This document shows, in pieces, positions 5,746-60,023 of a stretch of 64,000 nt of DNA (the first letter of the stretch is position 1; each line of letters begins with the position of its first letter). Position numbers and translations under genes: made by a program. The stretch is from Heteronotia binoei (lineage: Eukaryota), in assembly GCF_032191835.1 (NCBI RefSeq), contig NC_083227.1, forward strand, positions 24,800,001-24,864,000, given 5' to 3'. Under the pieces are notes generated by a model. It was given only the letters and a program-made list of their open reading frames with translations. It did not search any database and had not been told where the DNA came from.

Positions 5746-7898
<2,153 letters not shown>

Positions 7899-7906
7899 TT
7901 ATCAGT

Positions 7907-10900
7907 CAATTAAACTAAATCTTGGGGGAAAGCCGATAGGAGATGAAATGTCTCTGGTTCGGGAGGACTCGTCTCAAAGAGATGAAGGGTTAGCTGCTAT
8001 TTTTCTACCGGGTAACGGACCGGAGTTGTCCACTGTGAAGGTGACAAACAATATGGACTGTCTGCCAGTGTCTCGAGGCGGCAGGAGGAAGGTGGCGGGC
8101 CTAGCTCGCCTGGGAAATTATAGATGTTTGTATGCAAATGCTAGAAGTGTTCAAAGTAAAATTGGTGAATTGGAATGTTTAGTGCTGGGAGAAAACATAG
8201 ACATTGTGGGAATTTCAGAAACTTGGTGGAATGAGGAGAATCAGTGGGACACGGTGATTCCTGGATATAAGCTATATCGGAAGGATAGGGAGGGAAGGGT
8301 TGGAGGTGGGGTGGCTCTGTATGTAAGAGAGGATATACGGTCCAGTAAGGCTGAGATCAGAGAATTAGATTCACTTTTAGAAATGCTTTGGGTTGAAATA
8401 GAGGGCCCAAAAGGAAATTTAACTATGGGAGTTTGTTATCGCCCACCAAATCAAAAGAGAGAGGACGATTATAATATGATGGAAGGCTTAAAGATAGCGG
8501 CTAAACGTAAAAACTGTGTTGTAATAGGTGATTTTAACTACCCGCAGATTGATTGGGTCAATATGTGTTCTGGTCGAGAGAAAGAGATTGAGTTTCTTGA
8601 TGCTCTCAATGACTGTGCTATGGAGCAGATGGTCTCAGAACCTACCAGGGGTGGGGCGATCCTGGATTTGGTCCTAAGTAATGCCCAAGACTTGGTGAGA
8701 GATGTAAAAGTGATTGCGCCGCTTGGGAGCAGTGACCATAATGTTATTGATTTCACCGTTTGTATAAATAGGGAGTTGTCCAAAAAGACCACCACAACCA
8801 CGTTTAACTTTAAAAGGGGTAAATACACTGAGATGAGGAGGCATGTGAGGAAGAAACTGAAAGGAAAGGTACATACGGTCAAAACCCTTGAGAAAGCTTG
8901 GACGCTATTTAAAACTATAATCCTAGAAGCTCAGATAAAATACATACCACAAGTTAGGAAAGGCACAAACAGGCATAAGAAAAGGCCTGCGTGGTTAACA
9001 AATAAAGTAATGGAAGCTGTAAAAGGTAAGAAGGACTCCTTTAAGCGGTGGAAAACCAGTCCAAGTGAGATTAGTAAAAGGGAACACAGGCTGTGGCAAA
9101 TCAAATGCAAGACTGTGATCAGGCAGGCAAAAAGGGACTATGAGGAGCATATTGCAAAAAACATAAAGACCAACAATAAAACTTTCTTCAAATATATTAG
9201 AAGTAGGAAACCAGCCAGGGAGGCAGTGGGGCCCTTGGATGACCATGGGGTAAAAGGATTACTGAAGGAGGATAGGGAAATGGCTGAAAAGCTAAATGAA
9301 TTTTTTGCCTCCGTCTTCACTGTAGAAGACGAGAACTTTTTGCCCGCCCCAGAACCACTAATTTTGGAAGGGGTGTTGAAAGACCTGAGTCAGATTGAGG
9401 TGACAAATGAGGAGGTCCTACAACTGATAGACAAATTAAAAACTAATAAGTCACCGGGTCCGGATGGCATACATCCGAGAGTTCTGAAGGAACTCAAAGT
9501 TGAACTTGTGGATCTTCTAACAAAAATCTGTAATCTTTCATTGAAATCTGCCTCCATTCCTGAGGACTGGAAGGTAGCAAATGTCACCCCCATCTTTAAA
9601 AAAGGTTCCAGAGGAGATCCGGGAAACTACAGGCCAGTCAGTCTGACTTCAATACCGGGAAAGTTGGTAGAAACCATTATCAAGGACAGAATGAGTAGGC
9701 ACATTGATGAACACGGGTTATTGAGGAAGACTCAGCATGGGTTCTGCAAGGGAAGATCTTGCCTCACTAACCTGTTGCATTTCTTTGAGGGGGTGAACAA
9801 ACATGTGGACAAAGGAGACCCGATAGATGTTGTTTACCTTGACTTCCAGAAAGCTTTTGATAAAGTTCCTCATCAAAGGCTCCTTAGAAAGCTTGAGAAT
9901 CATGGAGTAAAAGGACAGGTCCTCTTGTGGATCAAAAACTGGCTGAGTAATAGGAAGCAGAGAGTGAGTATAAATGGGCAGTCTTCGCAGTGGAGGGCGG
10001 TAAGCAGTGGGGTGCCGCAGGGCTCGGTACTGGGTCCCATGCTTTTTAACTTGTTCATAAATGATTTAGAGTTCGGAGTGAGCAGTGAAGTGGCCAAGTT
10101 TGCGGATGACACTAAATTGTTCAGGGTGGTGAGAACCAGAGAGGATTGTGAGGAACTCCAAAGGGATCTGTTGAGGCTGGGTGAGTGGGCGTCAACGTGG
10201 CAGATGCGGTTCAATGTGGCCAAGTGCAAAGTAATGCACATTGGGGCTAAGAATCCCAGCTACAAATACAAGTTGATGGGGTGTGAACTGGCAGAGACTG
10301 ATCAAGAGAGAGATCTTGGGGTCATGATAGATAACTCACTGAAAGTGTCAAGACAGTGTGCGTTTGCAATAAAAAAGGCCAATGCCATGCTGGGAATTAT
10401 TAGGAAGGGAATTGAAAACAAATCAGCCAGTATCATAATGCCCCTGTATAAATCGATGGTGCGGTCTCATTTGGAGTACTGTGTGCAGTTCTGGTCGCCG
10501 CACCTCAAAAAGGATATTATAGCTTTAGAGAAGGTGCAGAGAAGGGCAACTAGAATGATTAAAGGGCTGGAGCACTTTCCCTATGAAGAAAGGTTGAAAC
10601 GCTTGGGACTCTTTAGCTTGGAGAAACGTCGACTGCGGGGTGACATGATAGAGGTTTACAAGATAATGCATGGAATGGAGAAAGTAGAGAAAGAAGTACT
10701 TTTCTCCCTTTCTCACAATACAAGAACTCGTGGGCATTCGATGAAATTGCTGAGCAGACAGGTTAAGACGGATAAAAGGAAGTACTTCTTCACCCAAAGG
10801 GTGATTAACATGTGGAATTCACTGCCACAGGAGGTGGTGGCGGCCACAAGTATAGCCACCTTCAAGAGGGGTTTAGATAAAAATATGGAGCACAGGTCCA

Positions 10901-11063
10901 TCAGTGGCTATTAGCCACAGTGTATGGAGCACAGGTCCACCAGTGGCTATTAGCCACAGTGTATGTGTGTATATAACATTTTTTGCCACTGTGTGACACA
11001 GAGTGTTGGACTTGATGGGCCGTTGGCCTGATCCAACATGGCTTCTCTTATGTTCTTATGTTC
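7907..11063 (+). mobile_element. 5'-truncated CR1 LINE with intact ORF2
   Basis: Ends in a (TTCTTATG)n tail; candidate 8-bp TSD TTATCAGT at 7899-7906 and 11064-11071; 39-bp tandem duplication at 10884-10961. Confidence 0.92.
7948..10914 (+). CDS. CR1 ORF2: APE endonuclease + reverse transcriptase (988 aa)
   Basis: EN motifs YANARS, GISETWW, GDFNYP, SSDHNVI; RT motifs QHGF, YLDFQKAFD, GVPQGSVLGP, FADD; no stops. Confidence 0.95.
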   Translation: MSLVREDSSQRDEGLAAIFLPGNGPELSTVKVTNNMDCLPVSRGGRRKVAGLARLGNYRCLYANARSVQSKIGELECLVLGENIDIVGISETWWNEENQWDTVIPGYKLYRKDREGRVGGGVALYVREDIRSSKAEIRELDSLLEMLWVEIEGPKGNLTMGVCYRPPNQKREDDYNMMEGLKIAAKRKNCVVIGDFNYPQIDWVNMCSGREKEIEFLDALNDCAMEQMVSEPTRGGAILDLVLSNAQDLVRDVKVIAPLGSSDHNVIDFTVCINRELSKKTTTTTFNFKRGKYTEMRRHVRKKLKGKVHTVKTLEKAWTLFKTIILEAQIKYIPQVRKGTNRHKKRPAWLTNKVMEAVKGKKDSFKRWKTSPSEISKREHRLWQIKCKTVIRQAKRDYEEHIAKNIKTNNKTFFKYIRSRKPAREAVGPLDDHGVKGLLKEDREMAEKLNEFFASVFTVEDENFLPAPEPLILEGVLKDLSQIEVTNEEVLQLIDKLKTNKSPGPDGIHPRVLKELKVELVDLLTKICNLSLKSASIPEDWKVANVTPIFKKGSRGDPGNYRPVSLTSIPGKLVETIIKDRMSRHIDEHGLLRKTQHGFCKGRSCLTNLLHFFEGVNKHVDKGDPIDVVYLDFQKAFDKVPHQRLLRKLENHGVKGQVLLWIKNWLSNRKQRVSINGQSSQWRAVSSGVPQGSVLGPMLFNLFINDLEFGVSSEVAKFADDTKLFRVVRTREDCEELQRDLLRLGEWASTWQMRFNVAKCKVMHIGAKNPSYKYKLMGCELAETDQERDLGVMIDNSLKVSRQCAFAIKKANAMLGIIRKGIENKSASIIMPLYKSMVRSHLEYCVQFWSPHLKKDIIALEKVQRRATRMIKGLEHFPYEERLKRLGLFSLEKRRLRGDMIEVYKIMHGMEKVEKEVLFSLSHNTRTRGHSMKLLSRQVKTDKRKYFFTQRVINMWNSLPQEVVAATSIATFKRGLDKNMEHRSISGY

Positions 11064-14449: not shown

Positions 14450-14676
14450 CTTGAGTCTGTTTTAAAGGCTGAATTTTGTTTTAAAAGTTTAACTCTTAAT
14501 AAGCTTTTACGTGCATGCACGTTACCAGCAGATATGTGCCAAGGTGGCCTAGTCTCCCTCTGACTGCTGGTGCTGTCATAGTGAGGAAGCAGAAAGCAAA
14601 CGGACCACCAGCCCCCCCTACCTGAGGTGAGCTCATCCCAAGCCAATGGCATGTTCCCCTCGTGAGTTCCCCTCAC

Positions 14677-14893
14677 CTCTCCTGCCAGATCTGCAGCCAG
14701 ACCCGAATTTCCCCTGCTGCCCGGCTACTGCTCCAAGAGTTGCTGCTTCTCTAGGGGAAGCCAGTGTGGAGCTCCGCCCAATGGCACAACAGGAAAAGGC
14801 ATCATGATTTGCATCTCTCCGCCCCCTCCCCTGCTTGTCAAGTTTGTCTCTCTCTGGCCTTTCTAGGAGTTGAGCTGCGTCGCTTTAACCCTT
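14677..14893 (-). promoter_or_regulatory. Putative promoter/first non-coding exon of ZNF gene 1 (cassette copy A)
   Basis: Minus strand AAGGGTTAAA...CCTAGAAAGG, GC boxes, CCAAT, octamer at 14807-14814, and donor GGAGAG|GTGAGG at 14676. Confidence 0.5.
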
Positions 14894-16776: not shown

Positions 16777-16900
16777 AAAGGGTTAAAGCAGCTGAGTTTC
16801 CCATCCTTCTCTTCCTAGAGGGGCCAAAACACATCCCAGTGGATTCTTCCTCCTCAGGAGGAATCAGACAAAGAGCTGCCTTCAGTTCCTTCCGGTTGGC
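16777..16900 (+). promoter_or_regulatory. ZNF-cluster promoter cassette copy B, upstream of the ZBED ORF
   Basis: AAAGGGTTAA-N7-GAGTTTCC-N13-CTAGAGGGG plus 16/16 AGTTCCTTCCGGTTGG, shared with copy C at 29834-29951. Confidence 0.6.
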
Positions 16901-17112
16901 ATTTTTTTAAGAGCAGCTGCCGTGAATCAATAGGGGCTGCAGTTGCTGAGCTGAATGGAAGAGGTCTCGAGCGTTTTCATAAGGTTGTAGTTCATTTTTT
17001 AATTTAAAAAACAGCAAAATTGCAATACATAAGGTAGCCCTCCCCCCCCAACTCAAATAAGAAAGCATATTTTAAAGGAAACCCCCTTCCAAAGGAAGAT
17101 ATGGACAGAAAG

Positions 17113-17578
17113 TAGGGTTGCCAATCCCCAGGTGGGGGCAGGGGATCCCCCGGTTTGGAGGCTCTTCCCCCCGTTCAGGGTCAAAGTGGGGGTGGAGCAG
17201 GGATAAATCTCTGCTGGGCACTCTATTCCCTATGGAGACCAATTCCCATAGAGTATAATGGAGAATTGATCCACAGATATCTAGGGCTGGGGGGGGGGGC
17301 TGTTTTTTGAGGTAGAGGCACCAAATTTGTAGCATAGCATCCAGTGCCTCTCCTCAAAACACCCTCCAAGTTTCAAAAGAATTGGGCCAGGGGGTCCAGT
17401 TCTATGAGGCCCAAAATGAGGTCCCCCTATCCATTATTTTTAATGGAGGGACGGCATTGAAAAGGTGTGCAGTTCCTTTCAATGTGATGACCAGAACTCC
17501 ATTTGCTTGTCACAACCTTGCTCCTGGCTCCACCCCCAGAGTCTCCAGATATTTCTTGAATTGGACCTGACAACCCTA
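17113..17578. mobile_element. Non-autonomous hAT element with TAGGGTTGCCA TIRs
   Basis: TAGGGTTGCCA / TGACAACCCTA; TSD ACAGAAAG / GCAGAAAG (7/8); related copy at 56876-57399. Confidence 0.8.
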
Positions 17579-18454
17579 GCAGAAAGATATATATTGGCTG
17601 CAAGAAAGCAAGAACTGAAATGACAAGCCCAGCAGGCTCATGACTTTGAAAAGAGAGAGGAAGAGTAGATAATGCAATACCCAAGTTACCCACCCACACA
17701 CAGGATGCTTCACCCCCCCCCCCTCCCCAGGGCAAGAGGAAATCAATTCCCCACAGAATTCCCTCTCTTCGAGGCACAAAGCAAGGAAAGATGCAAATGA
17801 GACAAAATGTGGGAAATCTCGAAAATCATCAAACCACCCCAGGAAATCCTTTAGCTCATCCCCACATTCTTAGGGGGCATCTACAGTCCCACTGAGAAAG
17901 ATGGACCAGAAATGAAAATCATCACAGAATTTAAAAGCCCTTTTTTTGATTCTCAGGTAGTTTTCTCCATCACTTTAAATTGGCCAATTCTTCACTAGAC
18001 CTTTAATCCTGGTTCAGCCTCGTCCCCAAACTGACATTCTACACTTAAATCGTGGAACCATAGAAACCCTCTCTATGAGCTTACGATTCTGTGATTCTAG
18101 TGTAGAAAATCAGTGTGGGGACAGGACTGTACTAGGATTAAAGGTCTAGTGTGGAATTGGCCTTTTTTTCCAAAGCACCCATTCAGGAAATGCTATGTTC
18201 TCCAGGCAGGTCTTCTTGACAATTCACCCATTTCTGCTTTTGTTCTTTGCAGCTCCACTGATGAGTCAGAGGGTTCCAGAACCATGCTGAAATCCTGCAA
18301 CTCATTTGCGGGCTCTGTCATATGAATGCTCCAGCCGTTGCCTTTCCAGGTACTGCAAGACCTTGGATATAATTGCTGTTACTAAATCTGTTAAGAGATT
18401 TCTTTTGTAGGTGTTTTCACACCCTAAAATGACATTGTGGCTTCTGCTCACTTA

Positions 18455-18745
18455 GAATAGAATCATAGAGTTGGAAGGGACCTCCAGGGTCATCTAGTCC
18501 AACCCCCTGCACAATGCAGGAAACTCACAAATACCTTCCCCTAAATTCACAGGATCTTCATTGCTGTCAGATGGCCATCTTGCCTGTTTAAAAACCTCCA
18601 AGGAAGGAGAGCCCACCACCTCCTGAGGAAGCCTGTCCCACTGAGGAACCGCTCTAACGGCGAGGAAGTTCTTCCTAATGTTGAGCCGGAAACTCTTTTG
18701 ATTTCATTTCAACCCATTGGTTCTGGTCCTACTTCCTGAGGCCAC
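18455..18745 (-). mobile_element. CR1 3' end (second subfamily)
   Basis: TAGAATCATAGAGTTGGAAGGGACC...GTCATCTAGTCCAACCCC tail, the reverse complement of the canonical CR1 (ATTCTRTG)n end. Confidence 0.75.
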
Positions 18746-19726
18746 AGAAAGCTTCCCTCCTTCCTGGGGGCTGTCAATGTCAGCTGTTAGTTGGGGCTTG
18801 GAGAGAGGGTTGCCAGGTTTGACTCAGAAATATCTGGGGAACTTTGGGGGCGGAGCCAGGAGCAAGGGTGTCTTAAGCATGATTGAACTCCAAAGGGAGT
18901 TCTGGCCATCACATTTAAAGGGAAACGCCTTCCAAAGGAAGAGATGGGCAGAAAGATATATATTGGGTGCAAGGAAGAACTGAAATGACAAGCCCAGTAG
19001 GCACATGACTTGGAAGGGAGGGAGGAAGAGTAGATACGCAATACCCAAGTCACACACCCACACCTGGTGCTTCACCCCCTCTAGGCAGGGCTGGATTAAC
19101 AATTAGGCCAAGTAGGCACTGGCCTATGGCCCCCACACCTTTAGGAGCCCCAGAATGGCTCTCCTCCCATTTCCCGCCCTGCTTGCAGCCCTCCCAGCCT
19201 CCACACGCAGCCAGCTTCTGGGAAGACAGCAAGCAGGCGGAAAACCAGGGGGGAAAGCCAGCCTGGGGCCCTAAAGGCATGGGGGCCATAGGCCAGTGCC
19301 TACATGGTCTAATTGTTAATCCAGCCTTGCCGCTTGGTCTCATCTGGCAGGGCTCTTCTGGTGTTTGTATTCAAACTCAAGTAGATAATCATGAAAGATG
19401 ACTGGTGAGGCAAGGGGAATCTTTTTGGTGAGAGCTGGAACAGTCCTTCCTTCTTTAAATCTCTCGACTTCTGCCTCTCTTTTGTCCCCCATGCCTATTT
19501 CTACCCCACCCCCCATATACTTCTCTGCCTAAACCTGAGCTTTCGTTGCCACTGATTTGTCCATCTCTAGTATGAGCAATATGTCAAAAATAAAAATACG
19601 TGCCTGTAGAACATATTTACATCATTTAAAAATATTTTCTTTATTTATAAGCTGCCTTTCTTCCCAGTGGGGAGCCAAAGCGGCTTATATTGTTTTCCTC
19701 TGCTCCTTTTTTATCTTTGCAACAAC

Positions 19727-19897
19727 CAGGGGTAGAATTCTAGCAGGAGCTCCTTTGCATATTAGGCCACACACCCATGATGTAGCCAATCCTCCAAGAG
19801 CTTTAAAAAAAGAGCCCTATAAGCTCTTGGAGGATTGGCTACATCAGGGGTGCGTGGCCTAATATGCAAAGGAGCTCCTGCTAGAATTCCACCCCTG
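19727..19897. mobile_element. 171-bp palindromic hAT MITE, 8-bp TSD
   Basis: Near-perfect hairpin; TSD GCAACAAC at 19719-19726 and 19898-19905. Confidence 0.88.
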
Positions 19898-20093
19898 GCA
19901 ACAACCCTGTGAGACAGGTGAGGCTAAGACTGTGTGACTGGCCCAAGGTTACCCAGCAAGTTTCCCTGGCAGAGTGGGAATCAAACTTGTGTTTCCCAGA
20001 TCTTAATCTGACCTTTTAACCAAGATACCACACCTGCTGTTTAGGTCACTGAGTACTGTTACTCTGTGAGAGCAGAAATATTTATTGTATATA

Positions 20094-20372
20094 GAGCCAG
20101 TTTGGTGTAGTGATTAACTGTGCGGACTCTCATCTGGGAGAACCAGGTTTGATCCCCCACTCCTCCACTTGCACCTGCTGGAATGGCCTTGGGTCAGCCA
20201 TTGCTATCGCAGGAGTTGTCCTTGAAAGGGCAGCTTCTGTGAGAGCTCTCTCAGCCCCACCCACCTCACAGAGTATCTGTTGTGGGGGAAGAAGATAAAG
20301 GAGATTGTAAGCCACTCTTGAGTCTCTGATTCAGAGAGAAAGGCGGGGTATAAATCTGCAATCGTTGTCGTC
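20094..20372 (+). mobile_element. tRNA-derived SINE family A
   Basis: AGAGCCAGTTTGGTGTAGTG head, B box GGTTTGATCCCC. Confidence 0.8.
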
Positions 20373-20528
20373 TAAAGGCCATCACAATGGAAAATCAAGC
20401 GCATAATCTGTTACTCTGTGTCAGCATAGGATTTGAATTGGTTGCAGGTCTTAATCTTCAGTGGCACAAACTGTATCCCTTCAGGTGGGTAACTGCCTTT
20501 TACAAAATCTGTTTTCAGGAATCCAAAC

Positions 20529-23033
20529 ATGAAGCGCCTCACGCGGTCTGCCATCGCCTCAGGCGCCATTACCATGGTAGCTCCAGAGATGCTCCCGAGA
20601 CCTTATCGGTGCCGCAGAACTCTCACCACAGACAAAGCCACGGTGCCCTTGGAGCACAATTTGTCTCAGGTGGTGAAAAAGACTGAGGATCCCGCCTCCC
20701 AGATGTGTTTGGAACTTCCTGACTCTAAGCTGCTCGCAGCTGATCTGAAGATGGAGGGTGTTGAAGGGGAGGAGCTGGGTTTGCCCACAGTGGCTCCCTA
20801 TCATACCGTCACCTTGTGGGAATGCCCGGCGAGTAACCCCGCCTCGACGTCAGGTGTGTGCAGCGCAGAATCGGAGCTCACCCCCTCGCCGCCAAAGCGC
20901 CGGAGGACCACGTCCTACGTGTGGGAGCACTTCAGCATCGACAACCGAGACAGGTTCGTGGTCGTGTGCAACCGTTGCCGAATGCGGGTGAGGCTTGGCA
21001 AGGAGGGTGGTTGCGGGAGGGTCGGGACCTCCGCTATGCACAAACACCTGCAGATCCACCACCCTTTCCTCGTGCTGCCAAAGAAGGATGGGGTGGCATC
21101 TCCAGGGGTCACGCCAGTAGCAAAGTCCCCCCAGAACACGACGACCACACCGGATCTGGCATCGCCACGAACTGCCGGGGTGGAGTCAACAACATTGCAA
21201 CTGACTGCTGATGAGCTGCGGGAGGGAAACCAATACCTTTCTCCGTTTGACCCTCTGGCTCTGCAGTACAACAGATTTTTGGCCGAGTATCTGGCTGAAG
21301 GGATGTTGCCCTACTCCACTGTAGAGGAACCTTCATTTCTGAGGATGCTGAAGCACCTCCAACCAGGTTGGAGAGTCCCTGGACACACCTACTTTGCAAC
21401 CCGTGCTGTCCCGGCTTTGTCAGCTGCGATCAAGACTGCCATGCAACGTGAGTTAGAGCTATCCATTGACCCAGTGGTGCCCCTCGCAGTAAGCATCTGG
21501 ACTAGCAACAGGAGGCAGGACTACATGACAGTGACGGCCCACTGGGTCTTGGACACAGTCGGTGTTCTGGTCCGGCGCCGTGCCACCCTGGCCGTGTGCA
21601 GCTTTGAAGAGAGTCCCGCCACCGGCAGTATCGCCCGTAAGATGAAAGCGGTGGTCAGCCAGTGGCTGGACCCCTTGCACCGGGAAGCACGCTATGTGGC
21701 TTGTGATGGTGGGGCCACCATGGAAAAGGCAATGGCGGATTCCAATCTGCATCCCATCCCTTGCATCTCCCGCTGCCTTGATCTGGTCGTGGAGAGGGTG
21801 TTGGAGCAGGCTGGTACGGAGGTCGATAGGGTACTGGGGAAGGCTCAGAAAGTTGTCAGCCACTTCCAAAGGTCACGCAAAGCCCGCCGCCGTCTGGCAG
21901 AGCTTCAGGCCCTGCACAGTCTCCCGCAAGAGCCACTGAGACTCAACGAGCAGGATCCAGTTGGGTGGAACACCACCCTTGAGATGGTGGAGCAACTGTG
22001 CACTCACCAGCGAGCCGTCGACGATTACCTGATTGAGAACAGGGAGCTCTGTCTGACATCCAGGGACTGGAGGCTGATGCGGGAGGTGGTGCGGCTGCTG
22101 GAAGTCTTTAAGGAGGCCACCGGTGTCATTCTCCGCAGAGATAACGCGACTCTGGGCCATGTCCTGCCCTTACTCCGTGTCATTGAAGGGTACGTGGAGG
22201 ACTTCTTGGATCAGGCCCGTCAACAGGGCGATGATGGCGCAGCAGCTGCCTGTCTGGCATCTGACTTACTGCAGGCCCTGAACGAGAGCAGACAATTGAC
22301 CGAGGTCAAGGGAAATATACTTTACCAAGCGGCAAGCTTCCTAGACCCTCGTTTCAAGGACTCCATGTCCCAGTTTTTGGTGGGGGATGCAGAGTACCAG
22401 ATTGAGGCTGTAAAGGAGCATGTGATCCAGCTGACGACGACAGAGGTGTGTCAGAAAAACCTGCCCCTGGACAAATCCATCAGTGGCCTCGAGGGGTCTC
22501 CAGCACTTGAAGAAGCACTGTTGTCTCCTCTGCCCCCGACGGGCAGCACCTCCTCGTGCTCGTCCCCTGAGAGCAGTGGCATTTGGACAAAATGGTGTGT
22601 GAGGCTTGGCTTGACTAAGGCTCCACACCCCAGTTCTGGGTCCCCCCCAGATGCCGCGTTGGTAGCCAGAGAAGAGGTGGGGGCCTACGTACGGGATTAT
22701 GTCGGATACATCGGGGCAAATACAGACCCCTTAATCTACTGGCAGCGGAAGCGGCATGCCTGGCCCTCTCTCTTCCTCGTGGCCCTCCGCTACGCCTCCT
22801 GCCCTCCCACCAGCATCTCTTCCAAGACGCTTTTCAGTGCCGCAGTGCCTGACATGAATGCGAATCTGGCTCGCCTCTCTCTTAACACTGCTGAGGTTCT
22901 GTCGTTCATCCGCATGAATCGGCAGTGGATTCCGGAAGGCTTTATGGCCCCACCTCCTATTTCCATAAATAGGAGGGTGAACCCCCCACACACTGAGGAT
23001 GATGGGAAGGAGGAGGAACCTGTGTTGGCCTGA
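20529..23033 (+). CDS. ZBED-like protein: BED finger + hAT (Ac-type) transposase core + hATC dimerisation domain, predicted catalytically inactive (834 aa)
   Basis: NLS-like PPKRRR; BED finger SYVWEHF...CNRC...GTSAMHKHLQIHH; hAT motifs IWTS, CDGG, WNTT, LDPRFK, DPLIYW...WPSL...PPTSISSKTLFS; single ORF; acceptor TGTTTTCAG at 20510-20518. Confidence 0.9.
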   Translation: MKRLTRSAIASGAITMVAPEMLPRPYRCRRTLTTDKATVPLEHNLSQVVKKTEDPASQMCLELPDSKLLAADLKMEGVEGEELGLPTVAPYHTVTLWECPASNPASTSGVCSAESELTPSPPKRRRTTSYVWEHFSIDNRDRFVVVCNRCRMRVRLGKEGGCGRVGTSAMHKHLQIHHPFLVLPKKDGVASPGVTPVAKSPQNTTTTPDLASPRTAGVESTTLQLTADELREGNQYLSPFDPLALQYNRFLAEYLAEGMLPYSTVEEPSFLRMLKHLQPGWRVPGHTYFATRAVPALSAAIKTAMQRELELSIDPVVPLAVSIWTSNRRQDYMTVTAHWVLDTVGVLVRRRATLAVCSFEESPATGSIARKMKAVVSQWLDPLHREARYVACDGGATMEKAMADSNLHPIPCISRCLDLVVERVLEQAGTEVDRVLGKAQKVVSHFQRSRKARRRLAELQALHSLPQEPLRLNEQDPVGWNTTLEMVEQLCTHQRAVDDYLIENRELCLTSRDWRLMREVVRLLEVFKEATGVILRRDNATLGHVLPLLRVIEGYVEDFLDQARQQGDDGAAAACLASDLLQALNESRQLTEVKGNILYQAASFLDPRFKDSMSQFLVGDAEYQIEAVKEHVIQLTTTEVCQKNLPLDKSISGLEGSPALEEALLSPLPPTGSTSSCSSPESSGIWTKWCVRLGLTKAPHPSSGSPPDAALVAREEVGAYVRDYVGYIGANTDPLIYWQRKRHAWPSLFLVALRYASCPPTSISSKTLFSAAVPDMNANLARLSLNTAEVLSFIRMNRQWIPEGFMAPPPISINRRVNPPHTEDDGKEEEPVLA

Positions 23034-23659
23034 GTCGTCAACAGATAATTGTGGGACTCTAGTCTTCAAGCCTCTTTTGTTATCGGTGTCTTTTTTACGT
23101 AAAGACCCCTCTAGAATGGTGTATAAAATATGAGCAGTTGAATTAGGATTGGTGGACCAGTTAAATCGGGAGTATTTGTCTTCTCTCTTTGTTTTCTTTT
23201 CGTTTTTGAGTGGGGCAGGTGATGTTTCCTGGCTCTCAAGCCCAGCACTTGAGCAAAGCTTCTCCTACTGGCCACCTGCTAGAATTGCATCTCGATACAG
23301 GAAGCATTGGCCTTTAAAAACTGCTGGTTTTTTTCCCCCCTGTGACTTTCCTTTAATTTTATTTAAAAAAAAAAAAAAGCACTAACACTGTAACCGTAGG
23401 CTGAGTTCTGGTGTTCCAGGCTAAAAGCTGCTGACCAAAAAAAGTATTCTGCCAATCATTCATATTTCTACAAATATCAAGTAACCTTATTAAATGTTTG
23501 TAATTTATTAAAATTTCTTTTTTAAAAGTTAACTTGAATTCCTTTGCAGCAAACTCCTGTGTGGCATGATGATTGTTTGCATCAAAACTGCTGATGATTA
23601 AAGCAACTTTTCAAGTTAATTTATTGATAAATAAAGGTAGACAGGTGAACCGCTGTAGT

Positions 23660-24329: not shown

Positions 24330-24529
24330 TAAACAAGCTATAGCATTTCACCCATTTATTCTATACCTCTCTTTAACGTGCCAGAAAAAGAGTTAAAGCA
24401 GAAGAGTTGCCAGCTCTGTCAACCACCAGGAGAGAGGGGATGGGGACATGGAGGGGGGCAGTCATCGACAGTGGTGTGATGTCACTTCCATGGTGGGAGT
24501 TCGGGAATTTATGTAGGAGGGTGTCAAGG

Positions 24530-29833: not shown

Positions 29834-29977
29834 AAAGAGTTAAGACGAGCGAGTTTCCGTGAATGAGATTGCTAGAGGGGGGGGGACTTCAAAGCTCTGT
29901 TAAAAAAAAAAAAAACCGCACAGACAACCTGCCGGAGTTCCTTCCGGTTGGAATTCTCAGCCGCTGCCCAGCAGGAG
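29834..29977 (+). promoter_or_regulatory. Promoter cassette copy C / first non-coding exon of ZSCAN gene 2
   Basis: AAAGAGTTAA-N7-GAGTTTCC-N13-CTAGAGGGG, AGTTCCTTCCGGTTGG, donor GCAGGAG|GTGAAT at 29978; CpG-rich. Confidence 0.6.
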
Positions 29978-30949
29978 GTGAATGGCGGCCGCGTGGTGAG
30001 TTAGGGAGGCTTAAAGTGGGGAAGGGGGCTCTGGAGGGGAAGGGGGAAGTTGCAGGGAATGCAATGTGTGGAGGGGAGGCTAGTTTGGCCAGAGAGAAAA
30101 AGGCTGGAAGACCAGAATAACATTTCCCACCCCCAGCCAGCCAGCTCCCCCCCACAAGCAGTGTGTGGCACCTAAGAATAACTTTGCAAGCAGTTCCCAA
30201 GCGTGCAAGCTTCTGAGTCAACACAGGACTCTTCTCCAGGTGTCCTCTATGACCCCTGTTTTTAAAAAGGCTTCAGTAGATGGGCATCTCCTCCTCTTTG
30301 CCATTCAAAAATTAGTCTTTTAAAGGTGTAGGCGGGCTGACTTCCCTGTAGCAACCCCCTCCTCCCGCATCCAGTTGACAGGATCTTTTAAAAATAATAA
30401 CAATAATAATTTCCTTCGTTCAGTTCTGCCTTCCTTTCCTGAGTGTGCCCACGCCCCCACCCATGTCAGTTTCCTATCCTGAGTGTGTCCACGCCCCCAC
30501 CCTTGTCAATTTCACCTTCTCTGTCAATTTAAAACTAATTTCGTTTTTACTTGTTGGCAGTCCCAGTTGGGGCATTTTCAATTGTGTGTGTTTCATAATT
30601 GTTTTATTTGTATTGCAGACTGCTTTGAGATCCACAGGATAGGGCAGCTAATAAATGTTTAAAATACCTAAATAATAAATAAGTAAAATTGCAATAATTG
30701 TTTTATTTATATTGCAAACTGCCTCGGGATCCACGGGATGGAAGGGCAGCTAATAAATGTTTAAAATACTTAAATAATAAACGAGTAAAATGTCGGAAGT
30801 GCTGACTTCAGCCAGTTAGAACAAAGTTTGAGTCCAGTGGCACGTTTAAAACCAACAAAGTTTTATTCATAGTATAAGCTTTCAGCACAGGAGCTGCTTG
30901 CAAAACCCTGTCCATTGGAAACTTCAGCTTAAAAAAATGTGCAGCAGTT

Positions 30950-49658: not shown

Positions 49659-49902
49659 AAGGGTTAAACTAGCAGAGCGGAGTTTCCTAGAGAGGACCAG
49701 AAAGGAAAAGGGGGGGCTGTGTTTTTTTTCTTAAACAAATAAGAGTGAATCCCCTTCCTTTTCATATTGAGATTCTCAGTAGCACTGGTGCACACACCTG
49801 GACATCAAAGGAGAGGTGAGTTCGGGTGCAAAGGTTTTTTCCCAGGGCAATGTCTTTGCCCAAGCCAGCCTGGGGCAGGAAAGAGCAATTCTGAAGCAGG
49901 AG
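49659..49902 (+). promoter_or_regulatory. Promoter cassette copy D / first non-coding exon of ZSCAN gene 3
   Basis: AAGGGTTAAA...GAGCGGAGTTTCCTAGAGAGG; donor AATTCTGAAGCAGGAG|GTGGGG at 49903 resembles the copy C donor. Confidence 0.5.
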
Positions 49903-59226: not shown

Positions 59227-60023
59227 CAGGGGTGGACAAACTTGTTTAATGTAAGAGCCACATAGAATGATGCTTGAGAGCCGCAAGACATGAATGCCAG
59301 TTGTTGGAAGGAAGGAAGGAAGGAAGGAAGGAAGGAAGGAAGGGAGGGAGGGAGGGAGGGAGGGAGGGAGGGAGGGAGGGAGGGAGGGATGATGGCTCAG
59401 TGGTAGAGCATCTGCTTGGTAAGCAGAAGGTTTCAGGTTCAATCGCTAGCATCTCCAACTAAAAAAAAGGGTCCAGGGAAATAGGGGTGAAAAACCTCAG
59501 CTTGAGACCCTGGAGCGCCGCTGCCAGTCTGAGTAGAAAATACTGACTTTGATGGACTGAGGGTCTGATTCAGTANNNNNNNNNNNNNNNNNNNNNNNNN
59601 NNNNNNNNNNNNNNNNNNNNNNNNNNNNNNNNNNNNNNNNNNNNNNNNNNNNNNNNNNNNNNNNNNNNNNNNNNNNNNNNNNNNNNNNNNNNNNNNNNNN
59701 NNNNNNNNNNNNNNNNNNNNNNNNNNNNNNNNNNNNNNNNNNNNNNNNNNNNNNNNNNNNNNNNNNNNNNNNNNNNNNNNNNNNNNNNNNNNNNNNNNNN
59801 NNNNNNNNNNNNNNNNNNNNNNNNNNNNNNGGGAGAGGTGGAAAGAAAGCAACTAACTTTAAATGCATTCTCCAAGCTGCCAGCTGGCTTGGCTTAGCGA
59901 AGTGATTTAAAGAAACAAATGCCTTCTCCAAGCTGGCCAATGGGGCCATGGGGACTTCAAGGACCATACAATATGTGTGAAAGAGCCACATGTGGCTCCT
60001 GAGTCATAGTTTGGCCACCCCTG
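59227..60023. mobile_element. Non-autonomous hAT with nested family B SINE and assembly gap
   Basis: CAGGGGTGGACAAAC / TTTGGCCACCCCTG; flanks CTATAAGG / TTGTAAGG. Confidence 0.7.
59576..59830. other. Assembly gap (255 N)
   Basis: Run of N. Confidence 1.

Follow-up and report, generated by a model that had tools for sequence, protein, structure and literature searches.

A candidate case of promoter capture in geckos: a paralogous SCAN-ZNF promoter/first-exon cassette upstream of a hAT-derived ZBED gene

The locus

The ZBED gene of the gecko Heteronotia binoei, which derives from a transposase of the hAT type, lies among zinc-finger (ZNF) genes on chromosome record CM063329.1. The stretch of 64 kb analyzed here, referred to as the window (its position 1 corresponds to about 24,800,001), holds a ZNF gene on the minus strand (ZNF gene 1) and two SCAN-ZNF genes on the plus strand (ZSCAN genes 2 and 3), with the ZBED open reading frame (ORF) situated between genes 1 and 2. 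The three ZNF genes are each preceded by a short cassette comprising a promoter and a first exon (D, A and C, respectively), and a further copy, cassette B, is found about 3.6 kb upstream of ZBED in matching orientation. A solid case can be made from sequence comparison that B is a true and ancient paralogue of the SCAN-ZNF cassettes. That B drives ZBED, and thus represents a 'promoter capture', is plausible, and we put it forward with reservation.

The cassette and its family

Cassette B opens with AAAGGGTTAA at 16777-16786, the counterpart of which in cassette A is AAAGAGTTAA at 29834-29843; the associated AAGRGTTAAR box spans 16778-16787 in B and 29835-29844 in A. In B the opening block is followed after 7 nucleotides (nt) by GAGTTTCC at 16794-16801 and after a further 13 nt by CTAGAGGGG at 16815-16823. 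The same three blocks, separated by equal spacers, are present in A (GAGTTTCC at 29851, CTAGAGGGG at 29872). Beyond CTAGAGGGG the two cassettes have in common CAGACAA...CTGCC and then an exact 16-mer of ETS type, AGTTCCTTCCGGTTGG, which occurs exactly twice in the window, at 16884-16899 (B) and at 29936 (A); a third match was not found in the 64 kb, even allowing 3 mismatches. A lone pair of 16-mers is about the chance level for a sequence of this length, but the collinear set of blocks is not. Indeed, the local alignment of A and B has a z of 10.9 and none of 300 shuffles scored as high. The shared blocks, equal spacers and identical 16-mer that had been pointed out in a sequence-only reading of the window were thus recovered by direct reading, by script and by alignment. 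A BLAST search at E<1e-3 did not join the A and B regions, and the likeness therefore resides in blocks and not in overall identity. Invariant blocks are also what the six-sequence alignment of the A and B orthologues displays.

The looser copies that the same reading had placed in front of ZSCAN gene 3 and ZNF gene 1 are real as well. Cassettes C and D are marginal when compared to a profile made from the A and B orthologues (nhmmer E ~0.2), and are significant in pairwise alignments against shuffles (z of 5.6 for B-C, 6.2 for C-D, 3.9 for A-C and 3.0 for B-D). A and B are each other's closest paralogues. The AAGRGTTAAR box has 6 matches in the window, versus 1.18 expected, a number that was reached in none of 100 shuffles; five of the six coincide with cassettes D, B, E, A and C, where E is an orphan copy without a gene. 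The sixth, AAGAGTTAAA at 14488-14497 on the minus strand, is found some 400 nt downstream of D within intron 1 of ZNF gene 1, and no further cassette blocks were seen beside it. The orphan E and this extra box do not agree with the earlier statement that the cassette occurs once per gene. In the other gecko loci examined all seven box matches fall at cassettes. Moreover, two further SCAN-ZNF genes of H. binoei have the box 3.1 and 3.8 kb upstream of their coding start, followed in both cases by a CTAGAG-type block, a TTCC element and a GTGAGT donor.

B shares the hallmarks of the family. The pair formed by the box and a CTAGAGGGG-type block is present in B, A, C and D and in two other loci (L005 and L006), and the TTCC (ETS-type) element that lies 40-60 nt beyond is represented in B by the 16-mer at 16884, identical to that of A. 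The GGAG(AG)/GTG donors ascribed earlier to A, C and D (the slash marks the exon end) are real and strong, at 9.6, 11.6 and 10.2 bits, respectively; these and all other donor scores are approximate, as the position weight matrix follows published frequencies only approximately. In genes 2 and 3 the annotation places the beginning of the coding sequence within the SCAN exon, so that exon 1 of the cassette is non-coding. Cassette D is conserved in two other geckos, and D and B are arranged head-to-head in all three.

In principle, the cassette could have been carried around by a transposable element. When the cassettes were compared to the window and six further gecko loci, about 185 kb in all, none gave a dispersed-repeat match, in line with the earlier view that the cassette is not such an element. 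In addition, apart from orthologues and gene-linked paralogues, neither the window nor the ~120 kb from other gecko loci yielded extra copies, the cassettes occupy orthologous positions in three genera, and nothing like a repeat end flanks them. We consider transposon carriage highly improbable. As judged from these comparisons, the cassette is family-wide and was duplicated along with the genes. The coordinates of the cassettes and of the elements around ZBED are collected in Table 1.

Table 1. Coordinates of the cassettes, the ZBED gene and associated elements in the window
Feature	Position	Strand	Description
Cassette D	14677..14893	-	promoter and exon 1 of ZNF gene 1; head-to-head with B; donor GAG/GTGAGG
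Cassette B	16777..16963	+	box, GAGTTTCC, CTAGAGGGG, ETS-type 16-mer, first-exon-like tail stopping at the expected family donor site
B donor positions	16964..17034	+	16964 family-homologous; 16984 and 17034 proposed earlier
Palindrome CTTCCAAAGGAAG	17086..17098	.	two inverted GGAA cores; 3' edge of the conserved B block
Candidate non-coding 5' untranslated exon	18253..18349	+	acceptor and donor conserved in three geckos
3' splice-site region of ZBED	20477..20518	+	GGGTAAC, pyrimidine tract, CAG/G; conserved in four geckos
ZBED ORF	20529..23033	+	834 aa; BED finger, RNase-H-like core, hAT dimerisation domain
Probable ZBED 3' untranslated region	23034..23634	+	AATAAA signal at ~23629, at its end
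Cassette E, orphan decayed copy	24380..24440	+	box and GAGTTGCC block; without 16-mer, gene or strong donor
Cassette A	29834..29995	+	promoter and non-coding exon 1 of ZSCAN gene 2; donor GTG/GTGAGT at 29996; annotated coding start 32916
Cassette C	49659..49815	+	promoter and exon 1 of ZSCAN gene 3; donor GAG/GTGAGT at 49816

The ZBED gene

The ZBED ORF is one intact frame, in which Pfam identifies a BED finger (PF02892) and a hAT dimerisation domain (PF05699) and the core of which aligns to Hermes. Orthologues with 72-79% identity, named 'ZBED6-like' by NCBI, were found in Sphaerodactylus townsendi, Paroedura picta and one Logan contig (L003). The Sphaerodactylus and Paroedura loci are syntenic to that of H. 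binoei, ZBED being preceded by a ZNF gene on the minus strand and followed by SCAN-ZNF genes. The coding sequence has a ratio of non-synonymous to synonymous substitutions (dN/dS) of 0.21-0.32 in all six pairwise comparisons, and ZBED is the sole selected ORF downstream of B on the same strand. A stretch of the 3' untranslated region (23242-23605) is 80% identical to Paroedura.

In the alignment to Hermes, the first catalytic Asp has become Ser and the Glu has become Lys, while the second Asp is kept; the state is identical in four geckos. Because two of the three catalytic residues are replaced in all four, ZBED is a domesticated gene and not a live transposase, and the earlier suggestion of a 'transposase co-regulated with TE repressors' (TE, transposable element) was overstated. 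Only chance-level inverted repeats flank the gene where terminal inverted repeats were looked for.

A contribution of host protein to ZBED was not found. According to Pfam the ORF holds the BED and hAT domains only and no host protein domain, which argues against a host-transposase fusion, and the similarity of the N-terminal 130 aa to 137 SCAN proteins is no better than that of shuffled sequence. The best relatives outside the geckos are 'ZBED4-like' proteins of a tick (Dermacentor), at 30-31% identity on a par with the squamate paralogues. This similarity may hint at an old horizontal spread of the hAT lineage.

Age and constraint of cassette B

Sphaerodactylus townsendi and Paroedura picta each have orthologues of both A and B at the corresponding positions. 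Each orthologous locus has exactly two copies of the 16-mer, of which one precedes ZBED and the other the next SCAN gene, and the duplication that gave rise to A and B therefore predates the split between Gekkonidae and Sphaerodactylidae. This split dates back in the order of 100 million years. The number of synonymous substitutions per site (dS) between the gecko species is 0.35-0.80, and yet the 16-mer has undergone a single change over six copies (five are identical), versus at least 14 changes expected neutrally (Poisson P ~1e-5). Moreover, when the block positions of B were defined from H. binoei alone, 37 out of 43 turned out to be invariant in the three orthologues, versus a background of about 63% (P ~8e-4).

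Overall identity conveys less. With gaps counted, the three-way invariance is 66% for B, 64% for A and 62-65% for the blocks of D, versus 25-38% for the flanks in MAFFT alignments (38% for the downstream flank of B). Intron blocks selected by BLAST nevertheless reach 61-64% three-way identity, which makes the overall figure alone a weak argument; it is the block-specific signal that counts. On that signal, B is under constraint, and its putative factor-binding blocks (the GGGTTAA box, CTAGAGGGG and the ETS-type 16-mer) were probably kept by selection. The palindrome CTTCCAAAGGAAG is conserved in three geckos as well, and the 25-nt bin around it (17075-17099) is invariant at 18 of its 25 positions in three species. 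A second occurrence of CTTCCAAAGGAAG is found at 18929, within a local duplicate.

Cassette E offers a control. It is recognized by the profile (nhmmer E=0.04) and by its alignment to B (z=5.6), and its orthologue in Paroedura has lost the blocks. E illustrates what becomes of an unconstrained cassette after an equal time span. It is sited between the 3' end of ZBED and A, and its first 32 nt are closer to B than to A.

These data bear on the possibility that B is itself a dead promoter relic, whose likeness to A reflects slow decay. The family donor has indeed been lost from B in all species, and the three-way identity of B is only slightly over that of the intron blocks. A slowly decaying relic would, however, not be expected to have its 16-mer intact in five of six copies and its motif positions conserved well above background between flanks that have so clearly diverged, the more so since the true relic, E, has decayed. 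It is improbable that B is dead.

From cassette B to the ZBED coding exon

About one third of the interval between B and ZBED (~1.2 of 3.5 kb) is ancestral and collinear with Sphaerodactylus and Paroedura, and the remainder consists of later insertions. The statement in the sequence-only reading that only transposable elements are found here was therefore incorrect for a third of the interval, and correct with respect to the lack of SCAN and finger exons. A tblastn search of the stretch from 14.9 to 29.8 kb detected no relics of these even with E values of up to 10 admitted, and the sequence between the cassettes of Sphaerodactylus and Paroedura was likewise free of them. The SCAN and finger coding exons that in the family follow 2.4-3.7 kb downstream are missing behind B. 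It is reasonable to infer from the family pattern that a ZNF gene body once followed B. The proposal of a ZNF unit whose coding exons were lost or replaced thus holds in so far as B is a true paralogue; as no SCAN or finger remnant is left, the loss or replacement itself stays conjectural.

A candidate relic at 20441-20578, in frame +2 with respect to ZBED, has 41% identity over 46 aa to the beginning of the gene 3 SCAN domain (SCAN3, aa 166-209; tblastn E=0.001). It is probably due to chance: it has no Pfam match, the SCAN profile gives E=0.9, the orthologous peptides of the three remaining geckos score at shuffle level, and shuffled 130-aa queries equal its bit score. The ancestral intron sequence also contains a local duplication of about 180 bp (17071-17112 plus 17579-17717 versus 18914-19079), older than the short interspersed element (SINE, 17112-17578) that split the first copy.

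The ZBED coding exon is preceded by what looks like a 3' splice site. A pyrimidine tract and CAG/G are located 10 nt before the ATG in all four geckos, with a conserved GGGTAAC some 30 nt upstream that resembles a branch point and also provides an in-frame stop. Within the interval, the segment 18253-18349 (~97 nt) has a good acceptor (a pyrimidine tract and TTGCAG/) and a moderate donor (CAG/GTACTG, 3.6-3.9 bits), and the sequence is suggestive of a small non-coding 5' untranslated exon. It is not the 5' end of a former SCAN exon, for which z was at most 2.1 versus 4.9-37 in the positive controls.

A number of observations weigh against transcripts that start at B and are spliced to ZBED. In all gene-linked cassettes a GTGAG donor scoring 8.1-11.6 bits follows at +145 to +254 relative to the box, and B is without one in any of the three geckos; its best donors are 5.3 bits in H. 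binoei, 2.7 in Sphaerodactylus and 8.4 in Paroedura, where the site is species-specific. Position 16964, the homologous counterpart of the donors in A, C and D, reads GTCTCG (-0.8 bits) and begins with AT in Sphaerodactylus. Since the family donor is lost, the splicing path cannot be the one that had been proposed. The donors suggested near 16983 and 17033 were not upheld: the site at 16984 (AAG/GTTGTA) is the only conserved GT just after B, and scores 0.2 bits, at the 56th percentile of the GTs in the window, and that at 17034 has 4.3 bits and no GT in the other two geckos. In H. binoei and in Sphaerodactylus, a junction at 16984 would, by frames read by eye from the referenced exons, place an ATG of B in the reading frame of the ORF; the annotated proteins begin at the proximal ATG, which argues weakly against the use of this junction in the gene models. 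The 1.4-kb interval of Sphaerodactylus contains no donors of at least 6.5 bits, and the strong donors in the interval of H. binoei sit within lineage-specific insertions. Finally, B is not CpG-rich, with an observed/expected (o/e) ratio of 0.25. Finger and coding exons being equally CpG-rich, this signal does not mark promoters, and the island test of B is uninformative.

Some other options were considered and set aside. Reading RTCTC at 16964 as a U12-type donor gives a poor fit to the consensus, and by eye the branch site is unconserved. No RNA-family match overlaps B, and elsewhere in the interval there are only sub-threshold hairpin matches. One sub-threshold microRNA-family match is located at 30063-30159, just downstream of the donor of A.

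The donor problem would disappear if ZBED used its own proximal promoter, located either within the 120 conserved nt that precede the ATG or at the 5' end of the ORF, which is CpG-rich. Cassette B would then be a conserved regulatory relic, acting as an enhancer, as an orphan promoter of a non-coding RNA, or as a partner of the divergent D, in keeping with the head-to-head arrangement in three geckos. The block 20410-20528 in front of the ATG is indeed conserved, the stretch 20701-21100 has the highest CpG o/e of the window at a GC content of at least 0.5 (0.76-0.86), and the genome and the Logan contig L003 stay collinear through the 'acceptor'. The finger exons show a like CpG o/e, however, and L003 may well be genomic DNA. 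In that contig a repeat fragment adjoins the acceptor region 52 nt upstream of the ATG; what remains is space for a branch point, a pyrimidine tract and AG, and thus little for a proximal promoter. The strict retention of the tract and CAG/G also speaks against this option, and we consider it rather unlikely.

Alternatively, B could be a distal, alternative promoter of ZSCAN gene 2. The long first intron of this gene would then house ZBED, the expression of which would depend on alternative splicing or on retention of the intron, as is the case for ZBED6 in ZC3H11A. The close paralogy and equal orientation of A and B, the absence of a gene between ZBED and gene 2, and the NCBI name of the orthologues are all compatible with such an arrangement. 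The donor problem nevertheless applies to it equally, ZBED has its own poly(A) signal and conserved 3' untranslated region, and A has its own, strongly conserved exon 1, with the relic E in between. This arrangement is quite improbable.

With these alternatives weighed, the picture that we favor is one in which B, an old copy of the gecko SCAN-ZNF promoter/first-exon module that predates the Gekkonidae/Sphaerodactylidae split and whose factor-binding blocks are retained by selection, most likely provides the catalytically dead ZBED with its promoter or with its main upstream control element. In fact, the divergent cassette D sets the upstream limit of the space in which ZBED transcription could start, and B is the only promoter-like element within it. 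We infer a transcription start at B. From there, ZBED transcripts would reach the coding exon through its conserved 3' splice site (20518), and they may include the candidate small non-coding exon at 18253-18349.

Other features of the window

The fingers of ZNF gene 1 are encoded at 5746-6879. Its first intron contains an intact long interspersed element (LINE) ORF on the plus strand (7948-10914, 988 aa, endonuclease and reverse transcriptase); the element may be young. ZSCAN genes 2 and 3 have their SCAN exons at ~32.9 and ~54.9 kb and their fingers at ~42.4 and ~60.7 kb. A run of 255 N (59576-59830) represents an assembly gap or mask.

Discussion

Domesticated transposases require host control sequences, and the route by which these are acquired is known in few cases. 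The nearest known case of promoter sharing is formed by ZBED6 and ZC3H11A in mammals. ZBED6 is a domesticated protein of the hAT/BED type, encoded by one intronless coding exon, that relies on the host promoter and an upstream non-coding exon and not on a promoter of transposon origin; the host gene is intact and ZBED6 resides within its first intron. The gecko ZBED resembles ZBED6 in the type of protein and in its single coding exon, and differs in that B is followed by no host coding exons and in that its putative promoter is a paralogous copy belonging to a tandem family of ZNF genes. B also stands apart from the cassettes of the tandem ZNF genes themselves, in that what follows it is not a set of ZNF exons but a gene derived from a transposase, and in that its family donor is gone.

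A general route of transposase capture has been described, in which a DNA transposon resides in or next to a KRAB or SCAN zinc-finger gene and an acceptor upstream of the transposase ORF takes host exons (Cosby et al., bioRxiv 10.1101/2020.05.07.082677). Over time the host transcript is lost, and the coding sequence of the captured transposase is under purifying selection (Cosby et al., bioRxiv 10.1101/2020.05.07.082677). The gecko locus fits this route, except that no host domain was fused: at most a promoter and 5' untranslated region would have been captured.

Fusions proper may be present in other squamates. Annotated gene models from Eublepharis macularius (LOC129329364) and Sceloporus undulatus (LOC121921799) combine SCAN (and KRAB) exons with a BED-hAT exon. 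In the Eublepharis locus (L004, 6001-19579) the ZBED exon (17261-19438) is preceded by a SCAN exon (6869-7048), and no recognisable cassette was found. The gecko ZBED likewise lies inside a SCAN-ZNF locus, but without the host domains. The two models are 32-33% identical to the gecko ZBED, which points to separate events, and they may represent independent host-transposase fusions in squamate ZNF clusters.

The broader proposal would be that a ZNF-family promoter, stripped of its own gene, has been driving a dead hAT-derived DNA-binding protein for about 100 million years, and that this protein is switched together with its SCAN-ZNF neighbours via the shared ETS-type element and GGGTTAA box. 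ZBED would then be a transposon-derived member of the circuit of the cluster, obtained by capture of a promoter only, without fusion of domains. We regard this proposal as tentative, with more doubt than belief.

The locus constitutes a dated and comparable example, in which the donor promoter family can be identified. Apparently working copies (A, C and D), a decayed copy (E) and a candidate exapted copy (B) are found side by side, and the arrangement is present in at least three gecko genera. In addition, a compact and testable promoter grammar has been defined for the gecko SCAN-ZNF genes. If B does not drive ZBED, it is a conserved orphan regulatory element still to be explained. If it does, promoter capture would be possible without protein fusion.

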